Shown here: positions 7,047 through 25,583 of the stretch, piece after piece
Layout: every line of letters begins with the position of its first letter
Position numbering within the stretch: the stretch's first letter is position 1
Assembly (NCBI RefSeq): GCF_006345805.1
Contig: NW_021836039.1
Span: 1-25,583 of the forward strand
Source: Octopus sinensis
Lineage: Eukaryota
Direction: 5' to 3'
DNA length: 25,583 bases
The notes under the pieces: model-generated
What the model was told of the DNA's origin: nothing
Database searches by the model: none
Seen by the model: the letters and a program-made list of their open reading frames with translations, nothing else
Position numbers and translations under genes: made by a program

Positions 7047-7396
7047 ATCATCATCATTGTTTAATGTCCATTCTCCATGCTAGCATGGGTTGGACGGTTC
7101 GACCGGGGATCTGGGAAGCCAGAAGGCTGCACCAGGCTCCAGTCTTATCTGGCAATGTTTCTACAGCTGGATGCCCTTCCTAACGCCAACCACTCCGAGA
7201 GTGTAGTGGGTGCTTTTTACGTGCCACCTGCACAGGTGCCAGGCGAGGCTTGCAACGGCCACGGTCGGATTGGTGCATTTTACGTGCCACCGGCACGGAA
7301 GCCAGTCGAGGCGGCGCTGGCATCGGCCACGAGTCGGATAGTGCTTTTTACGTACCACCAGACCAGGGGTCCTGGCTGGTTCAATTCGATTTCGAT
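7047..7396 (-). mobile_element. RTEX-type LINE 3' UTR with (ATG)n tail
   Basis: Reverse complement of 7850-8180, including ggttggcgttaggaagggcatccagctgtaga. Confidence 0.85.
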
Positions 7397-7413
7397 TAAA
7401 ATAATATATATAT

Positions 7414-8176
7414 ATGAGAGAAATGCTGGACATAACAAGCATCGGATGGGGCATGCAAGAAAGAAGTTTGCGCTGGTATAGTCATGTACTCCGGATGGAT
7501 GAGGAGAGATGTGCGAAGAAGTGCCACTCCCAAACAGTTGAAGGTATCCGGGGTAGAGGTAGACCCAGGAAGACATGGAATAAGGTGATCAAGCTTGATC
7601 TTCGAGCGTTGGGCCTCACAGAGGCAATGACGAAAGACCGAGACCTCTGGAGATATGCTGTGACAGCGAAGACCCGACAAATAACGTGAGGCTGTTTCCT
7701 GCACCAGCTTCACATAACAGCCCCAACCCATCGAAAATACCTTGGATCTCAGGACGGCCTACTGTGCTTACCTTGGATCGTAGGGTGACCTGCTTTGCTT
7801 GAGGAGACCTACTGAGTCAAGTACATCAACATCGAAATAAAAATCAAATGGAAATTGTAGTTGTGATACCCGTGCCAGTGGCACATACAAAACACCATCT
7901 CAACGAGGCTGATGCCACCGCCGTCTTGACTGGCTTCCGTGCTGGGGGCACATAAAAAGCAACAACCGATTGTGGCCGTTGCCAGCCTCCTGGGGTACCT
8001 GTGCTGGTGGCACGTATGAAGCGCCCTCTAAACTCACAGAGTGGTTGGCGTTAGGAAGGGCATCCAGCTGTAGAGACACTGCAAGATCAGACTGGAGCCT
8101 GGTGCTGCCTCCTGGCTTCCCAGACCACGGTCGAACCGTCCAACCCATGCTAGCTTGGAAAACGGACGTTAAACGA

Positions 8177-8180
<4 letters not shown>
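7414..8180 (+). mobile_element. 5'-truncated RTE/RTEX LINE: ORF C-terminus plus 3' UTR
   Basis: ORF 7414-7689 LRWYSHVLRMDEERCAKKC...RGRGRPRKTW...DRDLWR is the conserved RTE C-terminus; UTR ends aaacgatgat. Confidence 0.9.
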
Positions 8181-8229
<49 letters not shown>

Positions 8230-8410
8230 CACACATTTCTGTATGTATGTATGTACGCATGTATGTATGTATGTATGTATGTATGTATGTATGTATGTAT
8301 GTATGTGTGTATATTTGTATGTATGTATATATGTATTATGTAAGTATTATGTATGTATGTATGTATGTATGTACGTATGTATGTATGTGTGTGTGTGTGT
8401 GTGCGTGCGT
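8180..8410. repeat. (TA)n/(TATG)n/(TG)n microsatellites
   Basis: Direct inspection. Confidence 0.95.
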
Positions 8411-8429
8411 GTATTGTGGCTTTGTGTGT

Positions 8430-8600
8430 GTGTCCGTCGTTTACGTTTATCTCCATGTGACTTAGCGGTTCGCTATAAAAGGCCAATAAAATCTACCAGA
8501 CAAAAATGAGAAATAACTGGTGTCAATTTCTTAGATTAAAATTCTTCAATGCGGTGCCCCAGCGTGGCCGCAGTCTAATAACTGAAAAAAGTGAAAATAT
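8430..8600 (+). mobile_element. SINE family A, diverged 3' half
   Basis: gtttacgt...gacttagcggttcg...gcggtgccccagcgtggccgcagtctaataactgaaa. Confidence 0.7.
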
Positions 8601-8842
8601 CTACAAAAGTCCTCGGTAATACTTTAAACTAAGGGACATAACTCTTGTACCTCCCACTGTGGCTTTATCTGCTAGAAATAGCAGCCAAAATGATTTTAAA
8701 CCAGATAACATTGCTGTGTCTTCAACACCCAAATGAAGAGCAGAGTTTCAATCCTGGGATCATCCTGATTCCAAAAGGGTAGAATATGTCTATGCAGACT
8801 GAGGGACAGGGGTCACAGGCACAAGGGAATTTCGCTTTTATT

Positions 8843-10065
8843 AAGGTGGCGAGCTGGCAGAAACGTTAGCATGCCGGGCGAAATGCTTAGCAGTATTTCG
8901 TCTGCCCTTACGTTCTGTGTTCAAATTCCGCCGAGGTCGACTTAGCCTTTCATTCTTTCGGGGTCCATTAAATAAGTACCAGTTACGCACTGGGGTCGAT
9001 ATAATCGATTTAATCCGTTTGTCTGTCCTTGTTTGTCCTCTCTGTGTTTAGCCCCTTGTGGGTAGTAAAGAAATGGGTATTTCCTCTGCCGTTACGTTCT
9101 GAGTTCAAATTCCGCCGAGGTCGACTTTGCTTTTCATTCTTTCGGGGTCCATTAAATAAGTACCAGTTACGCACTGGGGTCGATATAGACGACTTAATCC
9201 GTTTGTCTGTCCTTGTTTGTCCTCTCTGTGTTTAGCCCCTTGTGGGTAGTAAAGAAATAGGTATTTCATCTGCCGTTACGTTCTGAGTTCAAATTCCGCC
9301 GAGGTCGACTTTGCCTTTCATTCTTTCGGGGTCCATTAAATAAGTACCAGTTACGCACTGGGGTCGATACAGACGACTTAATCCGTTTGTCTGTCCTTGT
9401 TTGTCCTCCCTGTGTTTAGCCCCTTGTGGGTAGTAAAGAAATAGGTATTTCGTCTGCCGTTACGTTCTGAGTTCAAATTCCGCCGAGGTCGACTTTGCCT
9501 TTCATCCTTTCGGGGTCCATTAAATAAGTACCAGTTACGCACTGGGGTCGATATAGTCGACTTAATCCGTTTGTCTGTCCTTGTTTGTCCCGTCTGTGTT
9601 TATCCCCTTATGGGTAGTAAAGAAATAGGTATTTCGTCTGCCGTTACGTTCTGAGTTCAAATTCCGCCGAGGTCGACTTTGCCTTTCATTCTTTCGGGGT
9701 CCATTAAATAAGTACCAGTTACGCACTGGGGTCGATACAGACGACTTAATCCGTTTGTCTGTCCTTGTTTGTCCTCTCTGTGTTTAGCCCCTTGTGGGTA
9801 GTAAAGAAATAGGTATTTCGTCTGCCGTTACGTTCTGAGTTCAAATTCCGCCGAGGTCGACTTTGCCTTTCATCCTTTCGGGGTCCATTAAATAAGTACC
9901 AGTTACGCACTGGGGTCGATATAGTCGACTTAATCCGTTTGTCTGTCCTTGTTTGTCCCGTCTGTGTTTATCCCCTTATGGGTAGTAAAGAAATAGGTAT
10001 TTCGTCTGCCGTTACGTTCTGAGTTCAACAATTCCGCCGAGGTCGACTTTGCCTTTCATCTCTTC
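8843..10065 (+). repeat. SINE family B whose body is expanded into a 184-bp tandem array (6 full units plus partial)
   Basis: Single SINE head 8843-8892; tcaaattccg (last copy tcaacaattccg) recurs at 8921, 9105, 9289, 9473, 9657, 9841, 10025. Confidence 0.95.
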
Positions 10066-10139
10066 GGATGTTATAATATAACACACTAACCGGTAAAATT
10101 CCCACTTTTTTGTTATTTTTATTGTACTTGCAACCTATA

Positions 10140-10140
<1 letters not shown>
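10066..10140 (+). mobile_element. Helitron-associated 3' terminal segment (partial)
   Basis: aacacactaaccggtaaaattcccactttttt...ttgcaacctat matches the reverse complement of 11484-11570, which lies downstream of the Helitron helicase. Confidence 0.65.
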
Positions 10141-10195
<55 letters not shown>

Positions 10196-10196
10196 T

Positions 10197-10236
<40 letters not shown>

Positions 10237-10327
10237 ATTTATGTATATATATATTATTTATGTATATATATATATATACATACTTATGTATACATATATA
10301 TATATAGATACTTATGTATACATATAT

Positions 10328-10364
<37 letters not shown>

Positions 10365-10378
10365 TGTATATATATCAT

Positions 10379-10557
10379 CATCAACAGAATCTCCAAGGCA
10401 AGCAGCGCGTTTGGGAGACTGCGAAAGAAAGTCTGGGAGCGGAGAGGAATCAGCCTCAACACCAAGTTGAAAGTCTACCGGGCAGTCGTGCTTACCACCC
10501 TACTATACGTCTGCGAGACGTGGACTGCTTACCGAAGGCACGAGCGCCAGATAAACC

Positions 10558-10560
<3 letters not shown>
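10379..10560 (+). mobile_element. RTE (BovB-like) LINE ORF fragment between (TA)n tracts
   Basis: [49 protein letters not shown], conserved post-RT region of RTE elements. Confidence 0.9.
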
Positions 10561-10589
<29 letters not shown>

Positions 10590-10745
10590 TGGCAGGGCTG
10601 GCCTGCTAGGTAGCCGGCCAGAATGCTAGAAGAAGGTCATCAACGATCAAACTACAAGGGAAATTCTCTAGAGGAAGAATTCAGCGAGCACTAGAACCAA
10701 CTTTGGCGGGCAGGACATATGAAAAATTAAATAAATAACAGACTT

Positions 10746-10823
10746 AAATGCATACCTCGGTTTCGGTCTTAACAAAAGAATTACTTGCATAATTCAAGTG
10801 TCCGTGACTTCATCAGTACATTC
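10746..10823 (-). ncRNA. Type I hammerhead ribozyme motif (left arm)
   Basis: Exact reverse complement of 11104-11181. Confidence 0.65.
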
Positions 10824-11103
10824 GGTCCTTGAGATGCAAACCGCAAGACTAACCCCAGCTCTCTGTGTCAAGACAGACACGTGCTTAGTCTTACTGATTA
10901 CATCGGGAATAAAATTTCAAATGTCTTGGTTCTGGCGCGCTGAGAGACTCCTGAAGCGAAGGGCTGCAGTGAATAATTCACTGCGGGTAGTGCTTACAAC
11001 TAGGGAAGGTATTTATTTAAATATTTAAAAATTGAGGGAGATAAATTAATATTAATTTTAATATCAATTTAAAACCAGTAGTCCAGCATTCAAAAAATGG
11101 ACC

Positions 11104-11181
11104 GAATGTACTGATGAAGTCACGGACACTTGAATTATGCAAGTAATTCTTTTGTTAAGACCGAAACCGAGGTATGCATTT
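11104..11181 (+). ncRNA. Type I hammerhead ribozyme motif (right arm)
   Basis: Stem I gaatgta/tgcattt; CTGATGA 11111-11117; extended stem II closed by gtc/gac; GAAA 11163-11166; short stem III ACC-GA-GGT; GUA triplet 11172-11174. Confidence 0.65.
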
Positions 11182-11483
11182 AAGTCTGTTATTTATTTAA
11201 TTTTTCATATGTCCTGCCCGCCAAAGTTGGTTCTGGTGCTCGCTGAATTCTTCCTCTAGAGAATTTCCCTTGTAGTTTGATCGTTGATGATCTTCTTCTA
11301 GCATTCTGGCCGGCTACCTAGCAGGCCAGCCCTGCCAAATACACATATATTTGAATTTTCTCTGACTCTCAGATTTTTTGAATGCTGGACTACTGGTTTT
11401 AATTGATATTAAATTAATTAATTTTATTATATCCCCTCATTTTTAATATTTTATATATATATATATATACACATACATATGTA

Positions 11484-11995
11484 TATAGGTTGCAAGACGC
11501 AACGAAAATTTTAGGACAATAAAAATAAGAAAAAAGTGGGAATTTTACCGGTGAGTGTTTTACATAATAAGGCACAAAAAGAAAATGATTCTCTCCAGAC
11601 ACAACAGAATTATTGAACTTTAGTATTACAACAACCAAAAAATAGAAACACATTTTCTTATGCGAATATAGTGTTGCGTTGACAATTTCAATTTAAAGTT
11701 TTTATTCATTCTGCAAATCTTGTCCGTTGATCCCATGCTAAAAACGTCCTTATAGACATTGGTTTGAGTTTTACCTGTAGGGGTGAACATGAAAAAATTG
11801 TCTTTGCTCCCCACACTGGAACCCCAGGATATGTCTGTGTGAAAAACAAGCCTTCTCTAATTGCAAAGAAGTAACTTTGAATGTCTGATCTTGGTACTTA
11901 TCAATGGACATCGCAAGAGACTGACGTATTGGAAATCGAAGTCGTTTGAGTTCGAAGGGAATATTTGAAGGTATTAAACTTAAGTGAGGCATAAA
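11484..11995 (-). mobile_element. Helitron 3' fragment (PIF1-type helicase C-terminus plus 3' end)
   Basis: SLIPSNIPFELKRLRFPIRQSLAMSIDKYQDQTFKVTSLQLEKACFSH, then frameshifted GSKDNFFMFTPTGKTQTNVYKDVF, matching Helitron RepHel C-terminus (FP(V/I)RLAFAMTINKSQGQT...CFSHGQLYV...KTKNVVY); terminal hairpin gttgc-gtctt-gcaac. Confidence 0.85.
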
Positions 11996-12145
11996 TATAT
12001 CTTCACCTTTTCCAAGACAAAAATATTCTGGCTTCTATGATATTTCTCGTTAATTTTTTGGATTTTCTTTTCTTTTGTTATTGTCTGCTATTCATACAGG
12101 CGCACAAGAAGTGTATGAACATACACCTACTTGTGTTTATACTTC

Positions 12146-12216
<71 letters not shown>

Positions 12217-12299
12217 GTATATATACATTATGTGTGTGCGAGGAGAGAGAGAGAGAGAGAGGGGAGAGGAGAGAAAAGAGAGAATATACTATATATATA

Positions 12300-12380
12300 C
12301 AGGTACATAAAATACCTTAGGAATGTGAACTCAGGTTTCAAATTTCCCCAAGACACCTGATGAAGGCTGGAGGGTATAAA
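12300..12380 (+). mobile_element. Truncated Penelope-like remnant with half hammerhead core
   Basis: aaatttccccaagacacCTGATGAaggctggagggtata; GAAA half missing. Confidence 0.45.
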
Positions 12381-12409
12381 AATAACATCTAGAATTTCTT
12401 CCCTTGCAG

Positions 12410-12459
12410 TAATTTTAGTCGAACCAATTGACTTCATTAAAGTACATTTTTTCAGCCTG
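12410..12459 (+). CDS. Candidate plus-strand internal exon (ILVEPIDFIKVHFFSL)
   Basis: Acceptor tttcttcccttgcag, donor CTG|GTAAGT, one open frame (phase 1 in, 0 out). Confidence 0.4.
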
Positions 12460-12539
12460 GTAAGTATCCGCTCAGTTTATATATATATAATATATATATA
12501 TATTATATATATGTATATGTATATATATATACTTTGATA

Positions 12540-12800
12540 CTTTGATAGGTTTCGGCCATTATTGGCCCAGGCCATGTCTAACTTAATAGCACTTAATTCC
12601 TTAAATCGTAGTCTTCGTTTCTGCTGGGGGCTCTTTCCATAAAGAAGTTTAGCATATAGCATCTGTTTAGGGATCCTCTGATCATTAATCTAAAGAAAAT
12701 GTCCAGTCCATCATTATACTCTGTGCTTTTATAATTTGACAAATTCAACCTCTCTTCTCTGGGCAACATATTTTCCTTTTGATGCTTTTAAAATATGAAA
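12540..12800 (-). mobile_element. Degenerate RTE LINE C-terminal fragment
   Basis: WTGHFL*INDQRIPKQMLYAKLLYGKSPQQKRRLRFKE, resembling RWTGHV.RM.D.RIPKQ.LYGEL..G.R..GRP..RFKD. Confidence 0.75.
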
Positions 12801-13171
12801 ATTACTTTGACAGTCATTGACCAGAACAAGATGAAGATCTCAGTCAGTAAAGGAATTTGTCTGGGGTCTTCAAAGTTTGAAGTTATTCTTTTTAGTTTTA
12901 TAAAGTCACTAAAAGTCTTACGTTTTCTCAATTTATAGAAAACTAACACTTTTATAAATGAGTTTATTGCTACGCATTAAATGTTAAACTAAATTTGCTC
13001 CAGCTGGTCTATATAAACAGTAACCTATAGCTTTGAACAGCCTTATTATTTTGTTGTGTATTTACATGGCATATAATGTGTGAATAGAATTTCTCCCCCA
13101 GTTATCCAAGCAAAAAATCAGAAACTTATGTTATCAATTTATTTAGAAGAATTTTGTACAAAGTTTGATAC

Positions 13172-13250
13172 AAAATAATTTTGTTGTGTCTGGGGAGAGT
13201 CATTCTCTTTTAGTGCCTTATTATTTAACACACTCACCGGTAAAATTTCG
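13172..13250 (+). mobile_element. Helitron-associated subterminal segment, third copy
   Basis: aattttgttgtgtctggggagagtcattctcttttagtgccttattatttaacacactcaccggtaaaatt matches reverse complement of 11540-11620. Confidence 0.7.
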
Positions 13251-14138
13251 TTTTGCTTTAATAGTAATTATCAATTTCTGAATAAAGTTCCTTTTTATCT
13301 AATTTAAATATCTTGATTATTTAATTTGAAAACAATCAGGTTTGTTCACTTCTATCACAAAAGAATCCAATAAAAAGTGGAGAATACTTATGAGTCTTCC
13401 TTTCCAATCCCACAAAAGTCTGCTCGGTAGAGCTTCCTGTCACATCTTATAATGTACATAAGGGTCTCATGTGTTTTACTTATTTAATCTTGGTCTCTGC
13501 TGTAAGAACTTGAAATCTAATTTCAAATTAAAATAACAGTGGAGTAATATGAAGGTAAATATTGTAAGGAAGAATTGTACTCTTCCTTTATCTGAAGTTA
13601 TTCAAAAAGAGGGAGACACTGTGGCTTTTCCACAATCACATGCAATTAAAACACACAATGTTTTGCCAGATTTTTCAGCACAGCTATTGTTTAATTATAA
13701 TTTTTTTTTATTATTTTCATATGTATAATAGTGAAGTTTTATTTTTACTGACGAAATTTCAGTAATTAGTAAATAACGAAGGTCATAAAGTAAGAATATA
13801 AAATTAGAATATTGTATATTGCACTCAAACCCCCTGAATTTTTATTCAACCACCACCACTTTGGAGAGGCCTGTCTTAAACCACAACAGGACAAAGTGAG
13901 ATATATCCTTAGATACATCATGTATTATATAGAAATACTATCTCTATAGGATATATAAAGGGAAAAGACATCAATATATATATATACCAGGCATTCTACT
14001 CTCAGCTAAAAATGAAGGTAGATAGCTATCAATATAGCAGAAGATATTAAAGCTGTCTATATAACAATGGGGTTGTTTAGGGAGGGGATTAGATATACAA
14101 CAACAGCAACAACAATAATGAACATTTCAAAGTTTGTC

Positions 14139-14144
14139 TTTATT
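14139..14144 (-). terminator. Candidate polyadenylation signal of the RING-death domain gene
   Basis: AATAAA on minus strand about 240 nt after the stop at 14386. Confidence 0.35.
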
Positions 14145-14385
14145 TTAAATGTGAATTTTAACAAAGGAGCCAAACCAGTGAATGGATCACTATGTGGCTG
14201 ATATACCTGCTAGAATTAGTAGCTAAATTCACACGATATCACTGTACAGAAGGGCATATTGGACAATGTGGTTGTGGGTTCTCTTTGGAAATAGGCATGA
14301 TGGTCCTGGCTGGAATGCGTTTGATCATAAGTCTCTGTTTGGTCAAGGTTAATCTGAGGCTAAACAACAACAGTTACACAGAAAT

Positions 14386-14582
14386 TCACTTTGCGTCTAA
14401 TGACAGACATTCCATCGCAGCGAAACATTCAGCTTCTTCAAGAGCTGCACTTAATGTTGCGTGTGTCCGTGTTTCTGGGTCGCAATTTTTGACCATTCGT
14501 AAAGCATCAGGTAGCCTTGTTTTAACGTCACATAGACTCATCATCATTTTCAGTTTAGTTGTATCAACTCCTAAAACAATCG
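14386..14582 (-). CDS. RING-death domain gene, terminal exon (death domain remainder)
   Basis: Acceptor gtgtcttttgcag; phase 1 in; (A)IVLGVDTTKLKMMMSLCDVKTRLPDALRMVKNCDPETRTHATLSAALEEAECFAAMECLSLDAK*; LGV...T...L..AL pattern of death domains. Confidence 0.8.
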
Positions 14583-14829
14583 CTGCAAAAGACACAACAA
14601 TAAGAAATAAATGCAACAACATCAACAATATTAACAATAATATAAAAGATGTGTGTTGTTATAAACATAACAAAGAAACTATTTCAAGAGAGAAATATAA
14701 AAAAATAGCTAAGAAACAAGAAAAATATAAGACATTGTTTTCTATTTCTAGGGATGATGAGAAAAATAACAAAGTGGTTAAATTAATGGAGATTTTTAAA
14801 AAAAATTAATTAAAGTTTACACTTGAGAA

Positions 14830-15390
14830 TCTTTTAAGGTAAACCGATGGCAGATGTGTTTGTGAAGGCAAAAGTGTATGAGAACCTAAAGAATCAACAT
14901 AGGGTACCAACAGGCAAACCATTTGATCCATTCATTTCCTCTGCTCAATATTTCTGGGAGAGTTGTGGGGATAGAGTCCCCAGGCATTTCTTCCATAGGG
15001 GCCTATCAGATGTAACCATCATTACATATTTTGGTTGGATTCCCAAGCATCAACAACTAAGTCTATGGATATCATCCAACTATTTAGTGCTTGGTCTACC
15101 CCTGGGTCTCCTACTCCATTGGTTTGACTTTGAGAACCTGTCTTGTAATTCATTCCTGCGACATTCTGATCACATGTCCTAGGTACCAGAGATGTGAAGA
15201 AGTGGCTCAACCTGGAGAGACTCCCAGATCTCTGAACTATACATCCTATTGGGTAACATTACTCCAGAGACCCTTCAGAGAAATCCCATATATCTGTCTT
15301 AATCTGGCAGATTTCAGATCTGATATTCAAAGGGTCATGAAAGTAATGTCTCTCTGTGAAATCAATCACCTTGCAAAGTTCCCAAAATGA
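14830..15390 (-). mobile_element. Degenerate RTE LINE 3' part
   Basis: LWYLGHVIRMSQE*ITRQVL...RRPRGRPSTK*LDDI across a frameshift. Confidence 0.7.
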
Positions 15391-16085
15391 CACTGAAAAT
15401 CAAATGAATAATGATAGACCAACAGTCGATTATTCTCAGTCAAATTCAATCCTTTTTGAATCTACTCCAGATTCAATCAATTCTCCTGAACCCATTCAGT
15501 TATTCTTATGTCTCAGTGAGAGAGAGACCAGCCATGGTCTGGCTTCACTTGTGAATATTCATTTTCTGTCAAATTTCCTTAAATTCATTCTCTCTTTTTG
15601 GATGTGGGGAATATGATATGATTTGGCTGTGTCACCCCTATACTAAGTCTGTTTTTACTGAAGCATTTACAAACATATGTCATATGGTAAAGTCATTCAA
15701 ATATGGCAATATAAATTGCAATTATCACTTTCAAACACAATAACCCAATCCCTAATGGCTTCAAGAAGACCCTAACTCATGGTCTTTTGATGGAATAAAG
15801 ACGAACCAAAAACGTTGACATTAACTCAGCTGTTACCCTTAACATATTTTTCTTCTTTCTTCCAATATTAAATGCTACTTGTATTTTCTTGTGTATCCAT
15901 AATTACCAACCTCAGAGGATACTTTATGAAATACCAGTAATATCATTAATAGAATTTATTTTGCAGCTAACCATTCCACTGGAAATTAGGAATGTAACCT
16001 GTTCTCTTTCATCCTGACAAATGAAATAGCTCAGGTGAATGTAAAATTTATAGAAATCAATTAGGTAGTGTAATTTTATACTCAC

Positions 16086-16157
16086 CGACTTGCCACCAAT
16101 CTCTTCCTAACCTCTTAGCCACTCTCAGAAGATCCTTCTCCTTCAGCTCTGGACTCC
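16086..16157 (-). CDS. RING-death domain gene, death domain N-terminal exon (72 nt, phase 1-1)
   Basis: atttatttcag acceptor, G|GTGAGT donor; (G)SPELKEKDLLRVAKRLGRDWWQV(A), typical death-domain helix 1-2 (L..VA..LG.DW..). Confidence 0.85.
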
Positions 16158-16390
16158 CTGAAATAAATATTTCCAAATTTTATAATTTATACTAAATTTC
16201 TTAATCTTTATTCTTGAGCCATGCTTATCATCAATGGTTAACTGGTGACCACTATGATTTTGGTCAACCTTTTTAATCTATGTAATAGCTCAATATTTTG
16301 GTCCACAACAAAATAGATTAAACTTCTTAAACTTCGTCTCTCTATCAAGACATCCTACATAATCTAACAATGTTGTATTTATCACATTTA

Positions 16391-17334
16391 ATTAGTTAGT
16401 TAGTTAGTTAGTTAGTTAATTTGGTTCAAAAGCAAATAGCAAGGTCATGTAGGGGGACATGGAGTTAAGTACAGGGTGGTGTTCATGTAAAGAGTTCAGG
16501 ACACTAGAGGTCAAGGGAGGCTTTGAACAAAGCGGTCGTCGGCATCTTCACCATCTCGTCTGGCAGCTTGTTCCACGGATCCGCAACCCGGACGGAGAAA
16601 GCTCCTCTCCTTCGATTGAGATGAAATCGTCGCAGGTAGAGCTTTTCGGAATGACCCCGCAGCCGACACTCTGGAGCAGGAGTGAAGAACAGCTCTTTCG
16701 AGAGGTTACACTTTCCGCTTATGATGTTGTGGGCGAGAATGAGATCACCACGGCGGCGGCGTTTTTCAAGAGAATAAAGGTCGAGCGTCCTCAGCCTTTC
16801 TTCATAGGACAAATTTTTGAGACCATGAACCATGCGGGTAGCCAGCTTCTGGACTCTTTCGAGATGCTGTATGTCTTTGAGGAGATAGGGAGAAGAGGCT
16901 TGAATCCCGTACTCCAATATGGGTCTCACCAGCGTGACATAGAGTGGTAGGAATATGGCTGCTGTGAGCATTCCGAATGACCGTCGAATCAAGAACAGAA
17001 TTCCGCGTGCTTTGTTGGCAGCATGGACGCACTGGGCCGAAGGCGAAAAGGAGGAATCCACCAAGATACCCAGGTCCTTTACCTGATCAGTCCTTTCCAG
17101 CAGCAGATGACCCGGCTCGAAATCAAGTTGAGTTGCAGGAGGAGAGCCAACAGGCAGATGACAGCACTTTGACACGTTCAGACACAGGTCCCATTCGTTA
17201 GACCACTTCCAAATTTGGTGGAGGCATCGACGAAGATCCTCTATATCACCGCGAGGAGCGACCAGTTTGATATCGTCGGCAAATAGAAGGGTGTGTTGCG
17301 TGAGGTCGTCGGGCAAGTCATTTATGAAGACCAG
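16391..17334 (-). mobile_element. 5'-truncated CR1-clade LINE, apparently young
   Basis: 270 uninterrupted codons FINDLPDD...LFADDIKL...VKDLGILVD...LVRPILEY...LERVQKLATR...RRRRGDLI...FSVRVADPWNKLP; short 3' UTR; (AACT)n tail 16391-16419. Confidence 0.95.
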
Positions 17335-17459
17335 TTGATAAGACTATTTTTCTCACAGTTCTCTATTTCCCTTCTTATATCTGTACCAAACCTGTGACAT
17401 GACTTCACTCACCAACATTTTTCTCATCTTCTGCTTAATTCTAATGTCAACAAGGTGTT

Positions 17460-18340
17460 TTCCAAAGACCTAATCCACAAATACACGGCAGACAAATTCA
17501 TGTAGGATAAACATACACCTGACATCTTTGTTAAGGGTTGATGTTGGTAATCTTGAATCGTAACTCCGCACATCCCAGTTCACAAGAACATCATCTGATT
17601 CAGGAAATATTTTAAGACTCCTTAATAAAGAAGTTCTTTAAAACCCTTTATTCCCCAAAAGTTTTGGCTTATCTATTGCTTATAAGATGTCTTCTTTTTG
17701 TGCTATTATCTCGATGCCTCTACTCTTGTGGGACAATGAGGTAGTGTACCATCACCCTAAACAGTTTCTCTTTAACCTTTGACATGCTTTCTTCTGCTAC
17801 TTTGAATTTCACTTATTTCTGCTGAGCTTTGGCCAATGACGGCAACATTTATTTGCCTTCAACCCTATTCTTGACCAACTAATTAATTAATACAGTCTAT
17901 TCAGAACTATTTGCATATCCTTTTGCTCTGTTGTTTGTGTTGTTATGTCATCCATTAATGTCGTCTTAGGGGACTTCACTCGAGTTATTTCTACTGATCA
18001 ATCTGCTGATCTAATAAACATTTCCATAACAAGTACAAACAAAATGACTGATATTGTGCAACCCACGGCAATTCCAGTCTCAAGACGATGCGAGTCTGTT
18101 GTGAAATATTCTGTCCTGAAGCGCATTTTGAAATTATTACAGCAACTCTTCATTAGATTCTTAATCTTTTCTCGTATATAAAAGACGTCCGTTGTTTTCA
18201 GCAACAATTCGTGTAGTACAGAACGATAAGCATTAACCTGATCAAGCCATACAACATTCAAATCGCTTTTGTTCTTCTTTGTATCTTGTATCGCATCCCA
18301 GATTCAAAATGCAAGTTCCACACATTCAGGGATTCCTGTC
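17460..18340 (-). mobile_element. Degenerate non-LTR retrotransposon RT, Hero/R2-superfamily-like
   Basis: GIPECVELAF*IWDAIQDTKKNKSDLNVVWLDQVNAYRSV...GIAVGCTISVILFVLVME...LMDDITT...LISWSRIGLKANK...AIDKPKLLGNK. Confidence 0.75.
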
Positions 18341-18565
18341 TTCTCTCTTTTACTCTTTACTCTTTTATTTGTTTCAGTCAGTTGACTGTGGCCATGCTGG
18401 AGCACCGACTTTAGTCGGGCATATCGATCCCAGGACTTATTCTTTGTAAGCCTGGTACTTATTCTATTGGTCTCTTTTCTCGAACAAATAAGTTACGGGG
18501 ACGTAAACAAACCAGCATCGGTTGTCAAGTGATGTTGGGGGAACAAGCACAGACACACAACATAT

Positions 18566-18614
<49 letters not shown>

Positions 18615-18768
18615 ACGAGTTTATTTCTGTTTCCGTCTACCAAATCCACTCACAAGGCCTTGGTCGGCCCGAGGCTATAGTAGAAGACATTTGTCCAAGG
18701 TGCCACGCAGTGGGACTGAACCCGGAACCATGTGGTCGGTAAGCAAGCTACTTACCACACAGACACTC
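18341..18768 (-). mobile_element. Near full-length SINE family A with internal (TA)n
   Basis: tRNA-like head, body, internal microsatellite and (AAGAGTA)-like tail; closely similar to 24963-25377. Confidence 0.9.
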
Positions 18769-19209
18769 TTTAATAGAATTACTTTACAGTTAAACTTTCA
18801 AAAAACGCAATTTGTTACATTATTGAGAGACATTCCTTCCTTGCAATGGTCAATTGGTAACCATTATGATTTTGGTCCACATTTTTCTAGTTTCTGTTCA
18901 CCTGTTTACCCCTAAACAACAACATATCTTAGTTCTTGGTTCCAAAAGACAATATTAACTCTATTGTGTTTTCTAATTTATCCCTTTTTCCATCCAAGGC
19001 AACAAAGATTTTATGAAATTTCAGCGATATATTTCATCGACTCCTTTTGCAGCTAACATTTCAAATGGAAATTAGAGATGGGCCCTGTTCTCAGTCCTTC
19101 TGACAAACAAAACAGCTCAGGGAGTGGAGAATTTATAGGAATCAGTTAGGTACATTGATTTCTATAAATTTTTCCATCGCCTGTGTTTTATGGAAACGAA
19201 TTGGTCATA

Positions 19210-19430
19210 GCAAGTGGAGGCGCCGGGCTTAATGGTTAGGGTATTTGACTCATGATTGTAAGATTGGGGTTTCGATTCCTTCACCAGGCAATACGTTGCG
19301 TTCTTGAGCAAAACACTTCCGTCCACTCAGCTGGCAAAAATAAGTAATCTTACAGCGAACTAGTGTCCTGTTCAGGGAGGAATGTATACGCTAGAGAAAC
19401 CGGGAAACCAACCCTATGCCTCTTATGGGA
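19210..19430 (+). mobile_element. tRNA-derived SINE, third family
   Basis: Head ggcttaatggttaggg...ggtttcgattcc, then gttcttgagcaaaacactt...cagctggcaaaaataagta; absent from the paralogous segment near 16070. Confidence 0.7.
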
Positions 19431-19463
19431 TAACATAATTAGGTACAGTTATTTCATACTCAC

Positions 19464-19514
19464 CAACTGGTCCTGCCACCATCTGGACTTCCATCTTTGA
19501 CGAATTTGGACCAA
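19464..19514 (-). CDS. RING-death domain gene, 51-nt linker exon (phase 1-1)
   Basis: gtatttttcag acceptor, TTG|GTGAGT donor; (V)GPNSSKMEVQMVAGPV(G); paralogous to exon 16086-16157. Confidence 0.55.
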
Positions 19515-20008
19515 CTGAAAAATACATTTCAAAGTGGTTTTAGTAAAATTTCTTTATCCTTTCTAATAATCGATATTTTATTATTGTGAGACATTCGTGT
19601 CATCACTGATGACAACATGCTTTTGGAGAACATTTGTATGCTTTCTACAGTGGGGCCAAGAAATGGTTCACTATTTGAGTCCACAACAGAATAGACTACA
19701 CTTAACAACCCTTCTCTGTCTCTTAAGTCATCCAACAATTCTAACAATTCTGAAATTATCTCATTTAATTATCCCCTAATAACCGATTGTCTCTTAGCTT
19801 CTTTTGGGTTTTCTTATGTTTGTGCTAGATCTATGACAAGACATCTCTAATCAACATTCGTCTCATCTTCTGCTTAAATCCAGTGTCAACCAAGTTGAGC
19901 ATCGAAGTCCTAGCCTCAAACGCGACACACCACTTCCAGACGGATATATATCTATATCTATCTATTTGTTTTGCAAGATTTTTGATGTGAAATGGTGTGT
20001 TGAAACAG

Positions 20009-20510
20009 ATATTGTTGTATTTAGGAATGGTCATTTTGCCAGTTTTGCGAATAAAAACACACGCACTATATATTTAGTGTTACTTTGCTTCAGCGTTATC
20101 TATTTTTTACTTTAATCTTAATCTTATTTCGGCAAGAGTTCTTCCGTCACACTTCTGTGACCTCATCAGTGGTCCTTTGCTTTCTTCTTTCTTATTTGTG
20201 TGTCTCTCCTTACTAACCATCAACCATTTTGTATTTTGTATTCCTATTGTACGTGTCCTCATTTGTGCATGCGTATACCTCTATGTGTGTCTATGTTTAG
20301 TTAGTGTGCGTGGGGGGGGGGTGAAGTGCCTGTAATATTTGTATCTTCTGTTTATATACGTACGTGTAATTTGTTTTTGCTTTTGGCCGAAATAAGATTA
20401 AGATTAATGTAAAAAATAAATAAGACTGAAGCAAAGTAACACCAAATATATAGTGCGTGTGTTTTTATTGGCTAAACTGGCAAAATGACCATTCCCAAAA
20501 ACAACAATAT
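20009..20510. mobile_element. Inverted-repeat element with ~125-bp arms (20009-20133, 20386-20510), Penelope-like
   Basis: Arms are diverged reverse complements; minus strand has CTGATGA (20163-20169) and GAAA (20127-20130) flanking two hairpins, but no stem I partner found. Confidence 0.6.
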
Positions 20511-21272
20511 ATCTATCTATCTATCTCTCTCTCTCTATATATATATATATATAGATAGATATATATGTATATATATATATACACTTGCTCTCTTTGTTAT
20601 TGGTTACTACTAGTAATCTTTAATTTTAATTACCCGCATCACAGTTCTCCAGAATGTAATCAGATGTGGGGAATATCTGAAGATATTTCAATGTCATTCA
20701 TCCTCCTGAATAAAGCAGGTCGAACAGAAAGTGACATCAGGTCTAACAGGAAGTGATATCTTGTGTCCTAAATTAACACACTACATTCACACAAAACCTC
20801 ATTAACGACATAAAACTTGTCATCCACACATTATTGCTGTGAAAATATTTGAAACGGTTCAGAAGAACTGATACTCGGGAATACTAATCTATACATCAAT
20901 CAAAGTTTCCCCACCCTTTTGATGTCCCCTCTCTAATGTTGGCCCCTAAACCCTCAGTTGAGATTTTTCTTATTGACTCTCTTATTTTATAAAAGCTCAC
21001 TTTGATATTCATATAAATGCAGTTGTTTTTAATTATCAGCTTCCGAAGATATTGATAAATCATTAATCACTCTAATCACACACAAGATGTCGGTATTTAC
21101 TGATAGAACCTTGGTGATTTATTGGCATTTAGTCACCATTTATAATTCAGTATTCTTTATTATTTTTATGTTGCAGAAAGTAGCCATCTTGAAGTGTGAC
21201 AAGTCTTCTAATTGGACAAGAACAATGTTTAGTGGGAGTAGTGAGAGACATAATATGACAGAGAAAAGACAC

Positions 21273-21320
21273 CTGGAACATCTTTTATCAAAAGTGTGCT
21301 TGAATATCGCAAAACTGGAT
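21273..21320 (-). CDS. Candidate 48-nt linker exon of the RING-death domain gene (phase 1-1)
   Basis: ttgttgtgtag acceptor after a 78-nt intron; (D)PVLRYSSTLLIKDVP; donor CAG|GTGTCT is weak. Confidence 0.35.
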
Positions 21321-21398
21321 CTACACAACAACATGAGATACAATATTCCACACCATAAAGCCTATGAGACAAACAGACAGATCATACAGTATTCTTAC

Positions 21399-21541
21399 CC
21401 AAACTATTTTTGCTCGTTATATTCTGTCTACACATAGGGCATCGTTTAGGTATCTTTGGGAGACAGCATTTCTTACACAGCGAAAGATGTCTACATGGAA
21501 AGAACGTCTCTGTGGCCACTTCGTCTTCACAAAACACACAT
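21399..21541 (-). CDS. RING-death domain gene, RING finger exon (C3HC4, IAP/MIB/MUL1-like subtype)
   Basis: tttttgttcctcag acceptor, TGG|GTAAGA donor; CVFCEDEVATETFFPCRHLSLCKKCCLPKIPKRCPMCRQNI = C-x2-C-x11-C-x-H-x3-C-x2-C-x8-C-x2-C. Confidence 0.9.
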
Positions 21542-21612
21542 CTGAGGAACAAAAACATGAACACATCCCATTAATAACATTCATTTATAACAAATATTAC
21601 ATTGTGTGCATA

Positions 21613-21745
21613 TTTACAGTAGAGAATATTATGCGACACCACAATTAAACAATTACATATGGGCGAATTTGTGAGTATATAAATGCAGACACAGACACAC
21701 ACACAAACACACGCACACACACACACACACACATAGACACACACA

Positions 21746-21783
<38 letters not shown>

Positions 21784-21919
21784 ACACACACACATATATA
21801 TATATATATATAAATGGACACAAATATTAATAAATATATGTCATAACATTGATACATCACAAAAAGTGATTTACGCAAAGTGAACAACATATATTCCAGA
21901 AATATAATTCACTTATATA
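21613..21919. repeat. Local duplication, copy 1 (copy 2 at 22819-23080)
   Basis: Near-identical unique sequence around a length-variable (CA)n tract. Confidence 0.9.
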
Positions 21920-21943
21920 CATACACATACACACACACATACA

Positions 21944-21974
<31 letters not shown>

Positions 21975-22215
21975 GTTTAGATGGGCTGGACACATCGCCC
22001 AGCTCACCGAAAATCTGTGGACACGCGCAGTTGTCGAGTGGTACCCGCGCGAGTGGAAACGACCACCCGGAAGGCCTCCACGTCGGTGGAGTAACGATTT
22101 CAGGAGGACGATTGGGATCACGTGGATGAGGAAGGCGCGATCCAGAGAGGAGTGGACAGCGTGCTGTGACCAGCGGTGTCAATTGGACGCCCGACGGACT
22201 AGTCGGTCAAGGTGA
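21975..22215 (+). mobile_element. RTE LINE C-terminal fragment
   Basis: RWAGHIAQLTENLWTRAVVEWYPREWKRPPGRPPRRWSNDF...ARSREEW. Confidence 0.9.
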
Positions 22216-22271
22216 TATATATGTATGTATGAATATATGTATGAACGTATGTATATATATGTATATATATG

Positions 22272-22320
<49 letters not shown>

Positions 22321-22722
22321 TACATACATACATACGTACGTACGTACGTACATACATGCATACATACATGCATACATATAACACTTGATTGTATCTAATC
22401 TGTTTTAGAAGTCGGCTATACTTAGACATTTGACTTTGAATTTTATGGATGGACAGATAGGACACAATTCCTACAGCTTCATGTATGGCTGATCCATGCC
22501 ACAAAACAGGTCATTGTTCTAAATTAGAGTAATAACTTTAGATTTATATACGATATGTGTGTACATAACCAGGGAATTATTTTCAAAAGTGATGAGTTGA
22601 ATGCAGTAAATGACATGTTTCCATCTGCCATCACTGCACCACAAACTTCAGATTGATCTCAGGTCATTACAAGGTACATTGTTATTCAATGACTGAAAGA
22701 CTGTGAGAAATAGTTCAACTAC

Positions 22723-22770
22723 CTGATTGGTCCCTTCAGTGCCTGGTCCATGCGTCTTCCTCCACCATGG
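22723..22770 (-). CDS. RING-death domain gene, 48-nt exon upstream of RING (phase 2-2)
   Basis: tttattccacag acceptor, CAG|GTAGTT donor; HGGGRRMDQALKGPI(R) joins in frame to CVFC; ATG at 22751 could be the start. Confidence 0.55.
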
Positions 22771-22818
22771 CTGTGGAATAAATAGCAAGTTACATTTCGT
22801 TACACAGAGACACTTTAA

Positions 22819-23080
22819 TTTACAGTAGAGAATATTATGCGACGCCACAATTAAACAATTACATATGGGCGAATTTGTGAGTATATAAATGCAGACACAG
22901 ACACACAGACACAGACACAGACACACAGACACAGACACAGATACACACACACATACACACATATATATATATAAATGGACACAAATATTAATAAGTATAT
23001 GTCATGACATTGATACATCACAAAAACTGATTTACACAAAGTGAACAACATATATTCCAGAAATATAATTCACTTATATA
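22819..23080. repeat. Local duplication, copy 2
   Basis: Homologous to 21613-21919. Confidence 0.9.
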
Positions 23081-23099
23081 TATATATATATGTGTGTGT

Positions 23100-23285
23100 G
23101 TGTCCGAGTCAGTCGCCATGATAGATTGTTAGCCGCTACACACATTTTTTTCTCTCCTTGTTTCTATCCTTGTTTTTTTTTCCGTGTCCCTTTCTGTAGA
23201 AGAGCGAAGGCTCGAAACGTAAAAGGCTTTTTCTATTCCTTCAACACCACCTGTCATCGTCTTTTGTTTTTTTCGTAAACTCTCC

Positions 23286-23290
<5 letters not shown>
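23100..23290 (+). mobile_element. Penelope-like remnant with minimal hammerhead-like fold
   Basis: 23189-23226: ccttt-ctgtagaa-gagc/gaag/gctc-GAAA-cg-t-a-aaagg; stems I and II pair, palindromic ACGT stem III, non-canonical core. Confidence 0.5.
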
Positions 23291-23368
<78 letters not shown>

Positions 23369-23370
23369 CG

Positions 23371-23406
<36 letters not shown>

Positions 23407-23409
<3 letters not shown>

Positions 23410-24876
23410 GGGGGAAATAAATATTCGTAAATGTCAAAATTCTTTCTTTATTTAAGTTCTAATGAACATAAATGGGATATACCACTATTATATATTTGCA
23501 TACAGATGCATAAACTAAGAATATGCGAAAGAAACTAATAAATTATGGTAACTAAGGAATTTATATACAATTATAAATATTTAGGGGTGAAAAACGTATT
23601 CGTACAGAATATAAATAACTGATAATTTTGATTTGATACTTCGTAGCATAACCATTATTCAGTTCCACTTCAACCAATCTCTTCTTGTAGTTCTTCACCA
23701 ATGACTCGCATGTTTCTTTAGGAATATTTTCCTATTCTTCTTGACAAATTTTCTTCAAATCTGTAATGCATGTTGGGGCTCTTCAATGGGGTTCAAGTCA
23801 GGTGACAGGCTTGGCCATTACAATAATTTTATATTGTGATTGACAATCCATATATGGTAGACTTCACCGTGTGCTTAGGGCCATTACCCTGTTGTAAAAC
23901 CCACCCTTCACAAAGCTGGAGCTTTTCAATAGAGCCCCATAAATTATTGTTCAAAATATTTTGGTACATCTCTGCATTCATTCTACCATCTATCACATGT
24001 AAATTGCCAGTACCATTTGCAGAGAAACACCCCCACACCTCCAATCTTTACGGTAGGAATTGTGTTTTTACTCCAGACATGGGTAAGCGAATTTCGTCCA
24101 AACAATTCAATTTTCGTCTCGTCTGTCCATAGAACATTTTACCAGAATGTATCAGATTTATCTTTATGTTCATAACAAATTTTAAACGGGCATCTCTATG
24201 CCTTTTAGTCAACAGAGGAGTTTTTCTAGGAGAGCGTGACTTCAGTTCATTCCTATGAAAACTCCTTTCTGGTGATTATTGCGTTTTTTTATATTCTTCT
24301 CTTCATTTTTCTTAAAGATCTTGGGGAAATCTTGCGTGGTGCTCCGGATCTTATTCTGTTTTCAACAGTTCCCGATTCCTTATATCTTTGAATAAATGAA
24401 GATATGGTAGTAAGCGGAATACAAAGTGTCTCTGATATTTTCCTGTAACTTTTACCTACTTTCTACAGTTCAATAATTAAGTTTTTCACTGAATTTGTGA
24501 GTTCTTTACTTTTCGCCATTATTGCGATATCACTTTATGTTGTCTCAGTGCTGAATGAAGAAGCTAGTGTTTTGACACTCAAAAATGAAAACTGATAAGA
24601 TTATTGGAATAAACAAGAAATTTTTAGTAAAAAAATATTTTAACAGTATTTTGTGGCATAGAAAATCATACATTTATTCTGTACGAATACTTTTTTCACC
24701 CCTAAATATTTATGATTGTATATAAATTCATTAGTTACTATAATTTATTAGTTTCTTTTGCTTATTCTTAGTTTATGCATCTGTATGCAAATATATAATA
24801 GTGGTATATCCCATTTATGTTCATTAGAAATTAAATAAAGAATTTTGACAGACGAATATTTATTTCCTCCCCACAG
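23407..24876 (-). mobile_element. Decayed full-span Tc1 transposon with ~205-bp TIRs
   Basis: TIRs 23407-~23612 and ~24672-24876, TA flanks; transposase pseudogene from ATG 24519 (MAKSKELTNSVK...RSGAPRKIS...VLWTDETKIELFG...VWGCFSANGTGNL...VLQQGNGPKH) to about 23630 with stops and deletions. Confidence 0.95.
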
Positions 24877-24881
24877 TATAT

Positions 24882-24962
<81 letters not shown>

Positions 24963-24964
<2 letters not shown>

Positions 24965-25377
24965 TTCTCTTTTTTCTCTTTTTACTTGTTTCAGTCATTT
25001 TGACTGCGGCCATGCTGGTGCACCGCCTTTAATCGAGTAACTCGACCCCGGGACTTATTCTTTGTAAGCCCAGTACTTATTCTATCGGTCTCTTTTGCCG
25101 AACCGCTAAGTGACGGGGACATAAACACACCAGCATTGGTTGTCAAGCAATGCTAGGGGGACAAACACAGACACACAAACGTACACACACATACATATAT
25201 ATACATATATACGACGGACTTCTTTCAGTTTCCGTCTACCAAATCCACTCACAAGGCTTTGGTCGGCCCAAGGCTATAGTAGAAGACACTTGCCCAAGGT
25301 GCCACACAGTGGGACTGAACCCGGAACCATGTGGTTGGTAAACAAGCTTCTTACCACACAGCCACTCCTGCGCCTAT
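24963..25377 (-). mobile_element. Full-length SINE family A
   Basis: Head ataggcgcaggagtggctgtgtggtaag...gggttcagtccc, body, internal microsatellite, tail gactgaaacaagtaaaaag. Confidence 0.9.
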
Positions 25378-25505
25378 ATATGTATATATATATATATATA
25401 CATGTATGTATCTATGTATGCATGTATAAATACATATGTATGTATGTATTCATGTATGTACACTAATTGTATGTGTTTGTAGGCGATTTTCTCAGGATAG
25501 CTCAC

Positions 25506-25546
25506 ATGGACATGACTGGCTGGGACAGAGAAGACAGAGGAATAAT
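25506..25546 (-). CDS. Candidate upstream exon of the RING-death domain gene
   Basis: tctctctaccaacag acceptor, AT|GTGAGC donor; IIPLSSLSQPVMS(I), phase 2 out fits exon 22770; ATG at 25513 gives MSIHGGGRRMDQALKGPIRC. Confidence 0.35.
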
Positions 25547-25583
25547 CTGTTGGTAGAGAGATAAATTCCATCACTTCACTATT

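Follow-up and report, generated by a model that had tools for sequence, protein, structure and literature searches.

Last exons of an ankyrin-RING-death domain gene, most likely from a decaying paralogue, in an Octopus sinensis contig

What kind of protein is encoded by the small minus-strand exons scattered over 25,583 nucleotides (nt) of Octopus sinensis DNA? This stretch, which comprises positions 1 to 25,583 of RefSeq contig NW_021836039.1 (assembly GCF_006345805.1) and is hereafter called the window, had been described in a first-pass annotation, made from the letters alone, as holding a hidden gene for a compact protein that begins with a RING and ends in a death domain (DD). We compared the exons with annotated octopus proteins and genomic loci, with domain profiles, and with solved and predicted structures. 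The results revealed that window positions 14386-22770, read on the minus strand, contain the last five exons of a member of a family that encodes ankyrin repeats, a RING, a variable linker, and a RIPK1-like DD, and that the ankyrin exons of this gene lie past the end of the window. The family appears to be restricted to Octopus and is tandemly expanded, its members may act as ubiquitin ligases that dock on DD assemblies, and the copy in the window is most likely decaying. We give this reading as a whole a probability of roughly 0.7.

Five exons and the loci that match them

The gene model comprises the following exons.

Positions 22770-22723, minus strand: cassette exon, 48 nt, phase 2-2, encoding (H)HGGGRRMDQALKGPI(R); acceptor ending in CCACAG, donor beginning with GTAGTT.
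Positions 21541-21399, minus strand: RING exon, 143 nt, with AG and GT ends; C3HC4 RING of the IAP/MIB type.
Positions 19514-19464, minus strand: linker exon, 51 nt, phase 1-1, encoding (V)GPNSSKMEVQMVAGPV(G); AG and GT ends; matched by tblastn.
Positions 16157-16086, minus strand: first DD exon (DD1), 72 nt, with AG and GT ends; helix 1 and the start of helix 2, (G)SPELKEKDLLRVAKRLGRDWWQV.
Positions 14582-14386, minus strand: second DD exon (DD2), 197 nt including the TGA stop at 14388-14386; acceptor ending in TTGCAG.

An AG acceptor was found at all five exons and a GT donor at all four internal ones, and the phases give a single open frame. This agreement of splice sites and phases is far beyond chance. 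The small minus-strand exons with GT/AG ends and matching phases that had been proposed were confirmed as these five, with refined boundaries, and the peptides quoted for them are encoded on the minus strand where they had been placed. The lengths of the cassette and linker exons are multiples of three, and the reading frame survives the skipping of either.

A search of 90%-clustered proteins returned P0071, an O. sinensis RefSeq protein of 274 amino acids (aa) named 'E3 ubiquitin-protein ligase MIB2 isoform X1', and isoform X3 (P0074). The spliced product of the window was 87% identical to P0071 over 170 columns. The first ~83 residues were 100% identical, as were the parts encoded by the cassette, RING, and linker exons. 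The cassette peptide corresponds to P0071 residues 105-120 (100% identity); at the near-identical O. sinensis locus, RefSeq isoforms X1 and X3 both include this exon, as does P0031. In most paralogues it is skipped or absent, and ...PPQ runs directly into CVFC. The linker exon is likewise optional, being included in isoform X1 (P0071) and left out in isoform X3 (P0074). The latter shows exactly the RING-to-DD join that the first-pass annotation had proposed (…NSL-G-SPELKEK), which is thereby found in an annotated relative. The DD1 peptide is identical to residues 334-357 of P0072 and holds the family-invariant L10, L17, and W21. The final 33 residues of DD2 are identical to those of P0001, and the DNA of this exon is 95-96% identical to two O. 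vulgaris loci, L001 (contig CATOCA020000001.1, ~11.07-11.11 Mb) and L002.

The similarity extends well beyond the exons. Window positions 7047-25583 are collinear with L003, the locus of P0071 on O. sinensis contig VCDQ01009215.1, at 97.6-99.1% DNA identity, and L001 and L002 match the window at 96-98%. These values indicate that the window is a very recent paralogue, allele, or orthologue of the three loci.

The 5' part of the gene could be located by this collinearity. Two ankyrin-repeat exons precede the cassette exon in P0071, the nearer of which lies at L003 13373-13555. The end of the window corresponds to L003 13869, which places the nearer ankyrin exon ~314-500 bp past position 25583. 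In L001 and L002, a full ankyrin array lies 5-20 kb upstream of the RING exon. No ankyrin exon was found within the window, either by tblastn with all relatives at E < 1e-3 or by a word-size-2 search with P0071 at E < 1. The suspicion that further 5' exons might lie beyond the window was therefore well placed.

The same comparison bears on the alternative that the gene encodes a compact RING and DD protein that starts inside the window, either at a proposed 'MSI' start (ATGTCCAT followed by GT, 25513-25506) or at the Met of MDQALK, with the RING at the N-terminus. An ATG does stand in frame inside the cassette exon, and short O. bimaculoides models with RING and DD only have been annotated, namely P0013 (152 aa) and P0016 (130 aa); these, however, may be fragments. 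The cassette exon has a good acceptor and, at the near-identical RefSeq locus, is joined to the ankyrin exon that lies just past the window end. In that model, the position equivalent to 'MSI' falls within an intron, since the true upstream exon is located past the end of the window, and ankyrin repeats precede the RING in all long relatives as well as in the near-identical O. sinensis model. We consider a compact protein of this kind very improbable, and neither the bracketed start nor the N-terminal position of the RING was retained in our model.

Modules, architecture, and distribution of the family

The RING exon scored 40.2 bits alone and 37.1 bits within the joined peptide against Pfam PF13920 (zf-C3HC4_3), for which the cut-off is 27. 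All eight zinc ligands are present (CVFC-x11-CRH-x3-CKKC-x8-CPMC, read from 21541-21399), and the closest matches in the PDB were the RINGs of cIAP2, CGRRF1, cIAP1, XIAP, and MUL1. The assignment to the RING subtype of inhibitor of apoptosis proteins (IAPs), MIB, and MUL1 proteins is upheld by these results, and the RING-bearing members of the family are predicted E3 ubiquitin ligases.

The DD was less readily detected. The window copy scored 19.1 bits against Pfam Death (PF00531), under the cut-off of 22.6, and its intact close relatives P0071 and P0072 also fell under the cut-off, with 17.2 and 17.6 bits. More distant members scored above it (P0006, 43.9 bits; P0076, 35.1 bits; P0007, 23.8 bits). 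In the HMMER check that had been suggested for the joined peptide, the RING thus passed and the Death profile did not; the claim of a C-terminal DD stands on the family profile and the fold. A profile built from 20 aligned family sequences matched the RIPK1 DD best, with E = 5.5e-11 over positions 3-87 of 92 (85/92), a result that applies to the family as a whole. The next matches were the DDs of PIDD, ankyrin-G, -B, and -1, FADD, CRADD, Fas, TRADD, and TNFR1. AlphaFold modelled the intact DD of P0071 with a predicted local distance difference test score (pLDDT) of 87.7 and a predicted template modelling score (pTM) of 0.80. When this model was compared with the PDB by using Foldseek, the top 20 matches were all DDs, with template modelling scores (TM) of 0.61-0.79, and RIPK1 was the best (TM 0.79). 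On the strength of profile and predicted fold, we take the C-terminal module of the family to be a genuine DD, closest to that of RIPK1.

According to Pfam, P0006, P0007, and P0076 each carry Ank, zf-C3HC4_3, and Death domains, and the domains listed for the long relatives are limited to ankyrin repeats (four to six), a single zf-C3HC4_3 RING, and a Death domain. The Pfam tables of six relatives, including members of 545 and 505 aa, contained neither BIR nor MIB_HERC2 nor ZZ domains, and no BIR domain appeared in the precomputed Pfam lists of 44 matches. The earlier remark that no BIR was seen holds for both sets. These data concern the possibility that the gene is a rearranged IAP with BIR exons upstream. 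The closest solved relatives of the RING are those of cIAP and XIAP, and oyster IAPs that combine a DD and a RING have been described; they belong to a family that has expanded in molluscs and has links to cell death and immunity (PMC8917759). The oyster proteins of the BIR-DD-RING type resemble the octopus family in having the same RING subtype and a DD on one polypeptide. By contrast, the octopus proteins have ankyrin repeats in place of BIR domains, and in them the RING precedes the DD. An IAP origin was rejected for the lack of BIR domains in the relatives scanned, and we leave it next to no probability.

The segment between the RING and the DD varies greatly in length: P0007 has none, and in P0012, P0003, and P0020 it exceeds 100 residues and is built from short units that recur. 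Paralogues carry one to several similar units at the position of the linker exon. This variation suggests duplication and skipping of small symmetric exons such as the 51-nt exon of the window. The linkers of P0012, P0003, and P0020 are themselves composed of two to eight tandem short peptide units, such as CPKSE(E/D)KAVQAVVESVV, and P0020 alternates EPSTSQH and KPSTSQP.

When the joined RING and DD peptide was searched exhaustively with phmmer against 1.84 billion representatives, 67 hits were returned. Relatives such as P0001, P0007, P0013, and P0017 contain the RING and the DD in one unbroken match. Every examined hit with both domains came from O. sinensis, O. vulgaris, or O. bimaculoides; the hits from outside Octopus were limited to the RING (a beetle double-RING protein and metagenome fragments) or to the DD (a crinoid). 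Within the libraries searched, the ankyrin-RING-DD family is provisionally restricted to Octopus. A single 12-Mb contig of O. vulgaris carries at least 14 of the models, and L001 and L002 are 5 Mb apart on it. Dozens of family models are already present in RefSeq and GenBank as 'MIB2-like', 'PSMD10-like', or 'ankyrin-3-like' proteins, and the gene is to that extent not hidden. The ankyrin-RING-DD order is a new arrangement of well-known modules, and its gene models are public under misleading names.

The annotated models also allowed us to weigh the alternative that the RING and the DD belong to separate transcription units, with an ankyrin-RING ligase that ends by read-through (…NSLGKNTV and a stop) and a small DD-only protein encoded downstream. 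A stop does occur five codons past the donor of the RING exon, and the O. vulgaris models P0031 and P0010 terminate within this region or close to it. The linker and DD exons of L001 are annotated as a gene of their own, of 100 aa, and DD-only models exist elsewhere (P0014, P0029, and P0034). The O. vulgaris ends, however, have explanations of their own. Compared with those of the window and L002, the RING exon of L001 (31067-31266) has single-base gaps at two places, which break the last zinc-ligand pair; because of these frameshifts, P0031 has an odd C-terminus and the DD exons of L001 are annotated as a separate gene. The end of P0010 reflects read-through from the linker exon into the intron. 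Furthermore, the RING and the DD are joined in frame both in the models that NCBI gives for the near-identical O. sinensis locus and in many paralogues of three species, and the phases fit at each junction. Two transcription units are accordingly improbable in our estimate, and we retain the joined ankyrin-RING-linker-DD gene.

Probable damage in the second death-domain exon and repeats in the window

Alignment of DD2 with its relatives exposed a defect in the window copy.

Positions 14547-14491, minus strand: out-of-frame stretch of 19 codons, MMMSLCDVKTRLPDALRMV, translated in a frame other than the ancestral one.

Relative to L001, L002, and L003, DD2 of the window shows single-base gaps near 14546, 14524-14531, and 14491. 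Together they amount to -3 nt, so that translation returns to its original frame beyond them. In the other two frames of the 14491-14547 stretch, the ancestral DDES and KQGYLMLYEW remain legible. The helix-3 motif M-L-x-x-W is kept in 19 of the 20 aligned family rows, and the window copy alone reads ALRMV, having lost the motif through the frameshift. The peptide quoted in the first-pass annotation included MMMSLCDVKTRLPDALRMV without its out-of-frame origin having been recognised.

The damage stands out against its surroundings. Over 12.9 kb aligned to L003, the DD2 gaps were the sole insertions or deletions (indels) in any exon and, except for a spot near 13654, the sole cluster of at least three indels within 60 bp outside microsatellites. 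Among proteins of 213-679 aa, the search turned up no annotated product containing the frameshifted peptide; the best match was 85% identical over the searched region. In AlphaFold models, the window DD reached a pLDDT of 76.6 and a pTM of 0.63, compared with 87.7 and 0.80 for the intact DD. The loss was marked at residues 41-50 (pLDDT 63 in the window DD and 87 in the intact relative), and a single residue of the window DD reached pLDDT 90, compared with 61 residues in the intact model. The frameshift accounts only in part for the sub-threshold Death score of the window copy, since intact close relatives score under the threshold too; the Pfam Death score does not separate the scrambled DD (19.1 bits) from the intact one (17.2 bits).

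Two explanations of the gaps were considered. In the first, the gene is fully functional, the single-base gaps are assembly errors, and the true DD is intact like those of P0071 and P0072. Every event is a single base at a short run of T or A, the similar gaps in the RING exon of L001 hint at error-prone assemblies, and the remaining exons are perfectly conserved. On the other hand, the exon indels across the 12.9 kb aligned to L003 are confined to these events, within 57 bp; a net change of -3 without a stop in either shifted frame would be rare under random error; and substitutions accompany the middle event. We lean slightly towards a real compensated change, which the kept frame and the lack of stops in the shifted stretch favour, and regard assembly error as somewhat unlikely. 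Unless the gaps are such errors, the alignments and models suggest that the window copy is most likely a decaying paralogue whose DD no longer assembles. At best, it would be an untethered ankyrin-RING ligase; more likely, it is becoming a pseudogene.

The neighbouring loci show defects of their own. That of L001 is the opposite of the window's, the RING being hit there and the DD here, and in L002 the RING and DD are intact and the cassette exon is gone. Such defects reflect either rapid turnover of the family, with frequent decay, or indel errors in the assemblies.

The window is AT-rich animal DNA with many microsatellites and transposon debris, and the following features were recorded in the introns of the gene and around it.

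Positions 21612-21929 with partner 22818-23090, strand not applicable: intronic direct repeat of ~300 nt including a GT/CA microsatellite; the pair flanks the cassette exon.
Positions 16394-17335, minus strand: reverse-transcriptase fragment, a 270-aa open reading frame with a weak RVT_1 match, in the intron between the linker and DD1 exons.
Positions 18001-18261: second reverse-transcriptase fragment.

L002 (~29989-30124) lacks everything between the direct repeats, including the cassette exon, as if the cassette had been deleted by recombination between the repeats. A local exon duplication was considered and rejected; the repeat found upstream of both the cassette and the RING exon lies in introns and does not reach into either exon. 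The reverse-transcriptase fragment at 16394-17335 is present in L002 and L003 and missing from L001, and therefore represents an insertion or deletion difference among the copies.

Outside the gene features, a unit of 184 bp is repeated in tandem 6.4 times at 8893-10064, with 95% identity, and the same array is found in L003. A repeat pair of ~380 nt (18382-18768 and 25000-25367) is 84-87% identical and has many more copies in L001, L002, and L003; it is presumably an interspersed element resembling a short interspersed nuclear element. An 88-aa open reading frame on the minus strand at 623-886 scores 26 bits for a CCHC zinc knuckle (Pfam zf-CCHC) and is probably left over from a retroelement gag. 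ARAGORN called no tRNA genes in the window.

Comparison with known systems and predicted role

The database name 'MIB2-like' refers to Mind bomb (MIB1 and MIB2), which shares with the octopus family an order of ankyrin repeats followed by RINGs of the zf-C3HC4_3 subtype. The likeness ends there. MIB proteins are ~1000 aa long, whereas the octopus proteins are shorter, at 270-560 aa. No MIB/HERC2, ZZ (MZM), or REP region was detected in the octopus relatives, and a single internal RING is followed by a linker and a DD, unlike the two or three C-terminal RINGs of Mind bomb. True membership of the Mind bomb group was rejected on the absence of MIB_HERC2 and ZZ in Pfam and the presence of one RING instead of two or three.

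The order of ankyrin repeats N-terminal to a C-terminal DD is also known from ankyrins 1-3, ANKDD1A/B, DAPK1, and NF-kB p100/p105, and the DDs of ankyrin-G, -B, and -1 were among the top profile and fold matches of the octopus DD. None of these proteins is known to have a RING between the ankyrin repeats and the DD, and the octopus proteins lack the ZU5/UPA, kinase, and Rel domains of the known ankyrin-DD proteins. The DD of RIPK1, the top match in both profile and fold, differs in that identity is only ~20% and neither a kinase nor a RHIM is found in the octopus proteins.

On this basis, we propose a role for the intact members. The RING would recruit E2~ubiquitin, the ankyrin repeats would hold a substrate or partner, and the RIPK1-like DD would dock the ligase by homotypic contacts onto DD assemblies of the RIPK1, FADD, TNFR, or MyD88 type. 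The optional cassette and linker exons might set the distances between the RING and the modules that flank it. Overall, the protein would be a Mind-bomb-like ligase in which a DD substitutes for the N-terminal substrate-binding region. We infer these ligase, docking, and spacing roles from domain content and from analogy with MIB2. Mammalian MIB2 binds oligomeric RIPK1 via its N-terminal MZM region, ubiquitylates it, including at lysines at DD-DD interfaces, and restrains cell death (PMC5912950). The octopus proteins have a DD in place of the MZM region of MIB2, and through it they may gain access to similar targets by another route.

Several findings weigh against parts of this reading. The function proposed here for the family is a prediction, and a full-text literature search found no published description of an octopus ankyrin-RING-DD family. 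The kinship of the ankyrin-RING part to Mind bomb is suggested solely by domain order and database names, and a PDB search with full-length P0072 returned generic ankyrin-repeat matches only, which are silent on MIB ancestry. The window copy, P0071, and P0072 score under the Pfam Death cut-off, and the DD call leans on the fold and on the profile of the family. At two near-identical loci, the RING and the DD are left unjoined in the O. vulgaris annotation. Finally, the open frame through the DD2 gaps could mean that an altered protein is still made and used.

The names 'MIB2', 'PSMD10-like', and 'ankyrin-3-like' mask the DD, Pfam misses the DD in one subfamily, and some models split the RING from the DD; the main value of the finding is accordingly to correct annotation. 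Taken alone, the copy in the window, probably a damaged paralogue, is of little interest. For the family, a broader interpretation can be offered tentatively, and we hold it to be doubtful at present: its dozens of fast-turning-over, tandemly amplified copies may constitute an octopus-evolved ligase class, unseen elsewhere in our searches, in which a Mind-bomb-like ankyrin-RING module is fused to a RIPK1-like DD and whose members are diversified tuners of DD signalling in innate immunity or cell death. Copies that have lost the RING or the DD, such as the one in the window, might be natural decoys. Lineage-specific shuffling of death-fold domains has been described in oysters and other marine invertebrates (PMC8195603, PMC8917759), and the octopus family, if the interpretation is true, would add another case. 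Innate immunity and cell-death signalling are poorly charted in cephalopods, and an octopus-only RING-DD family would then provide a ready set of candidate regulators of DD complexes.

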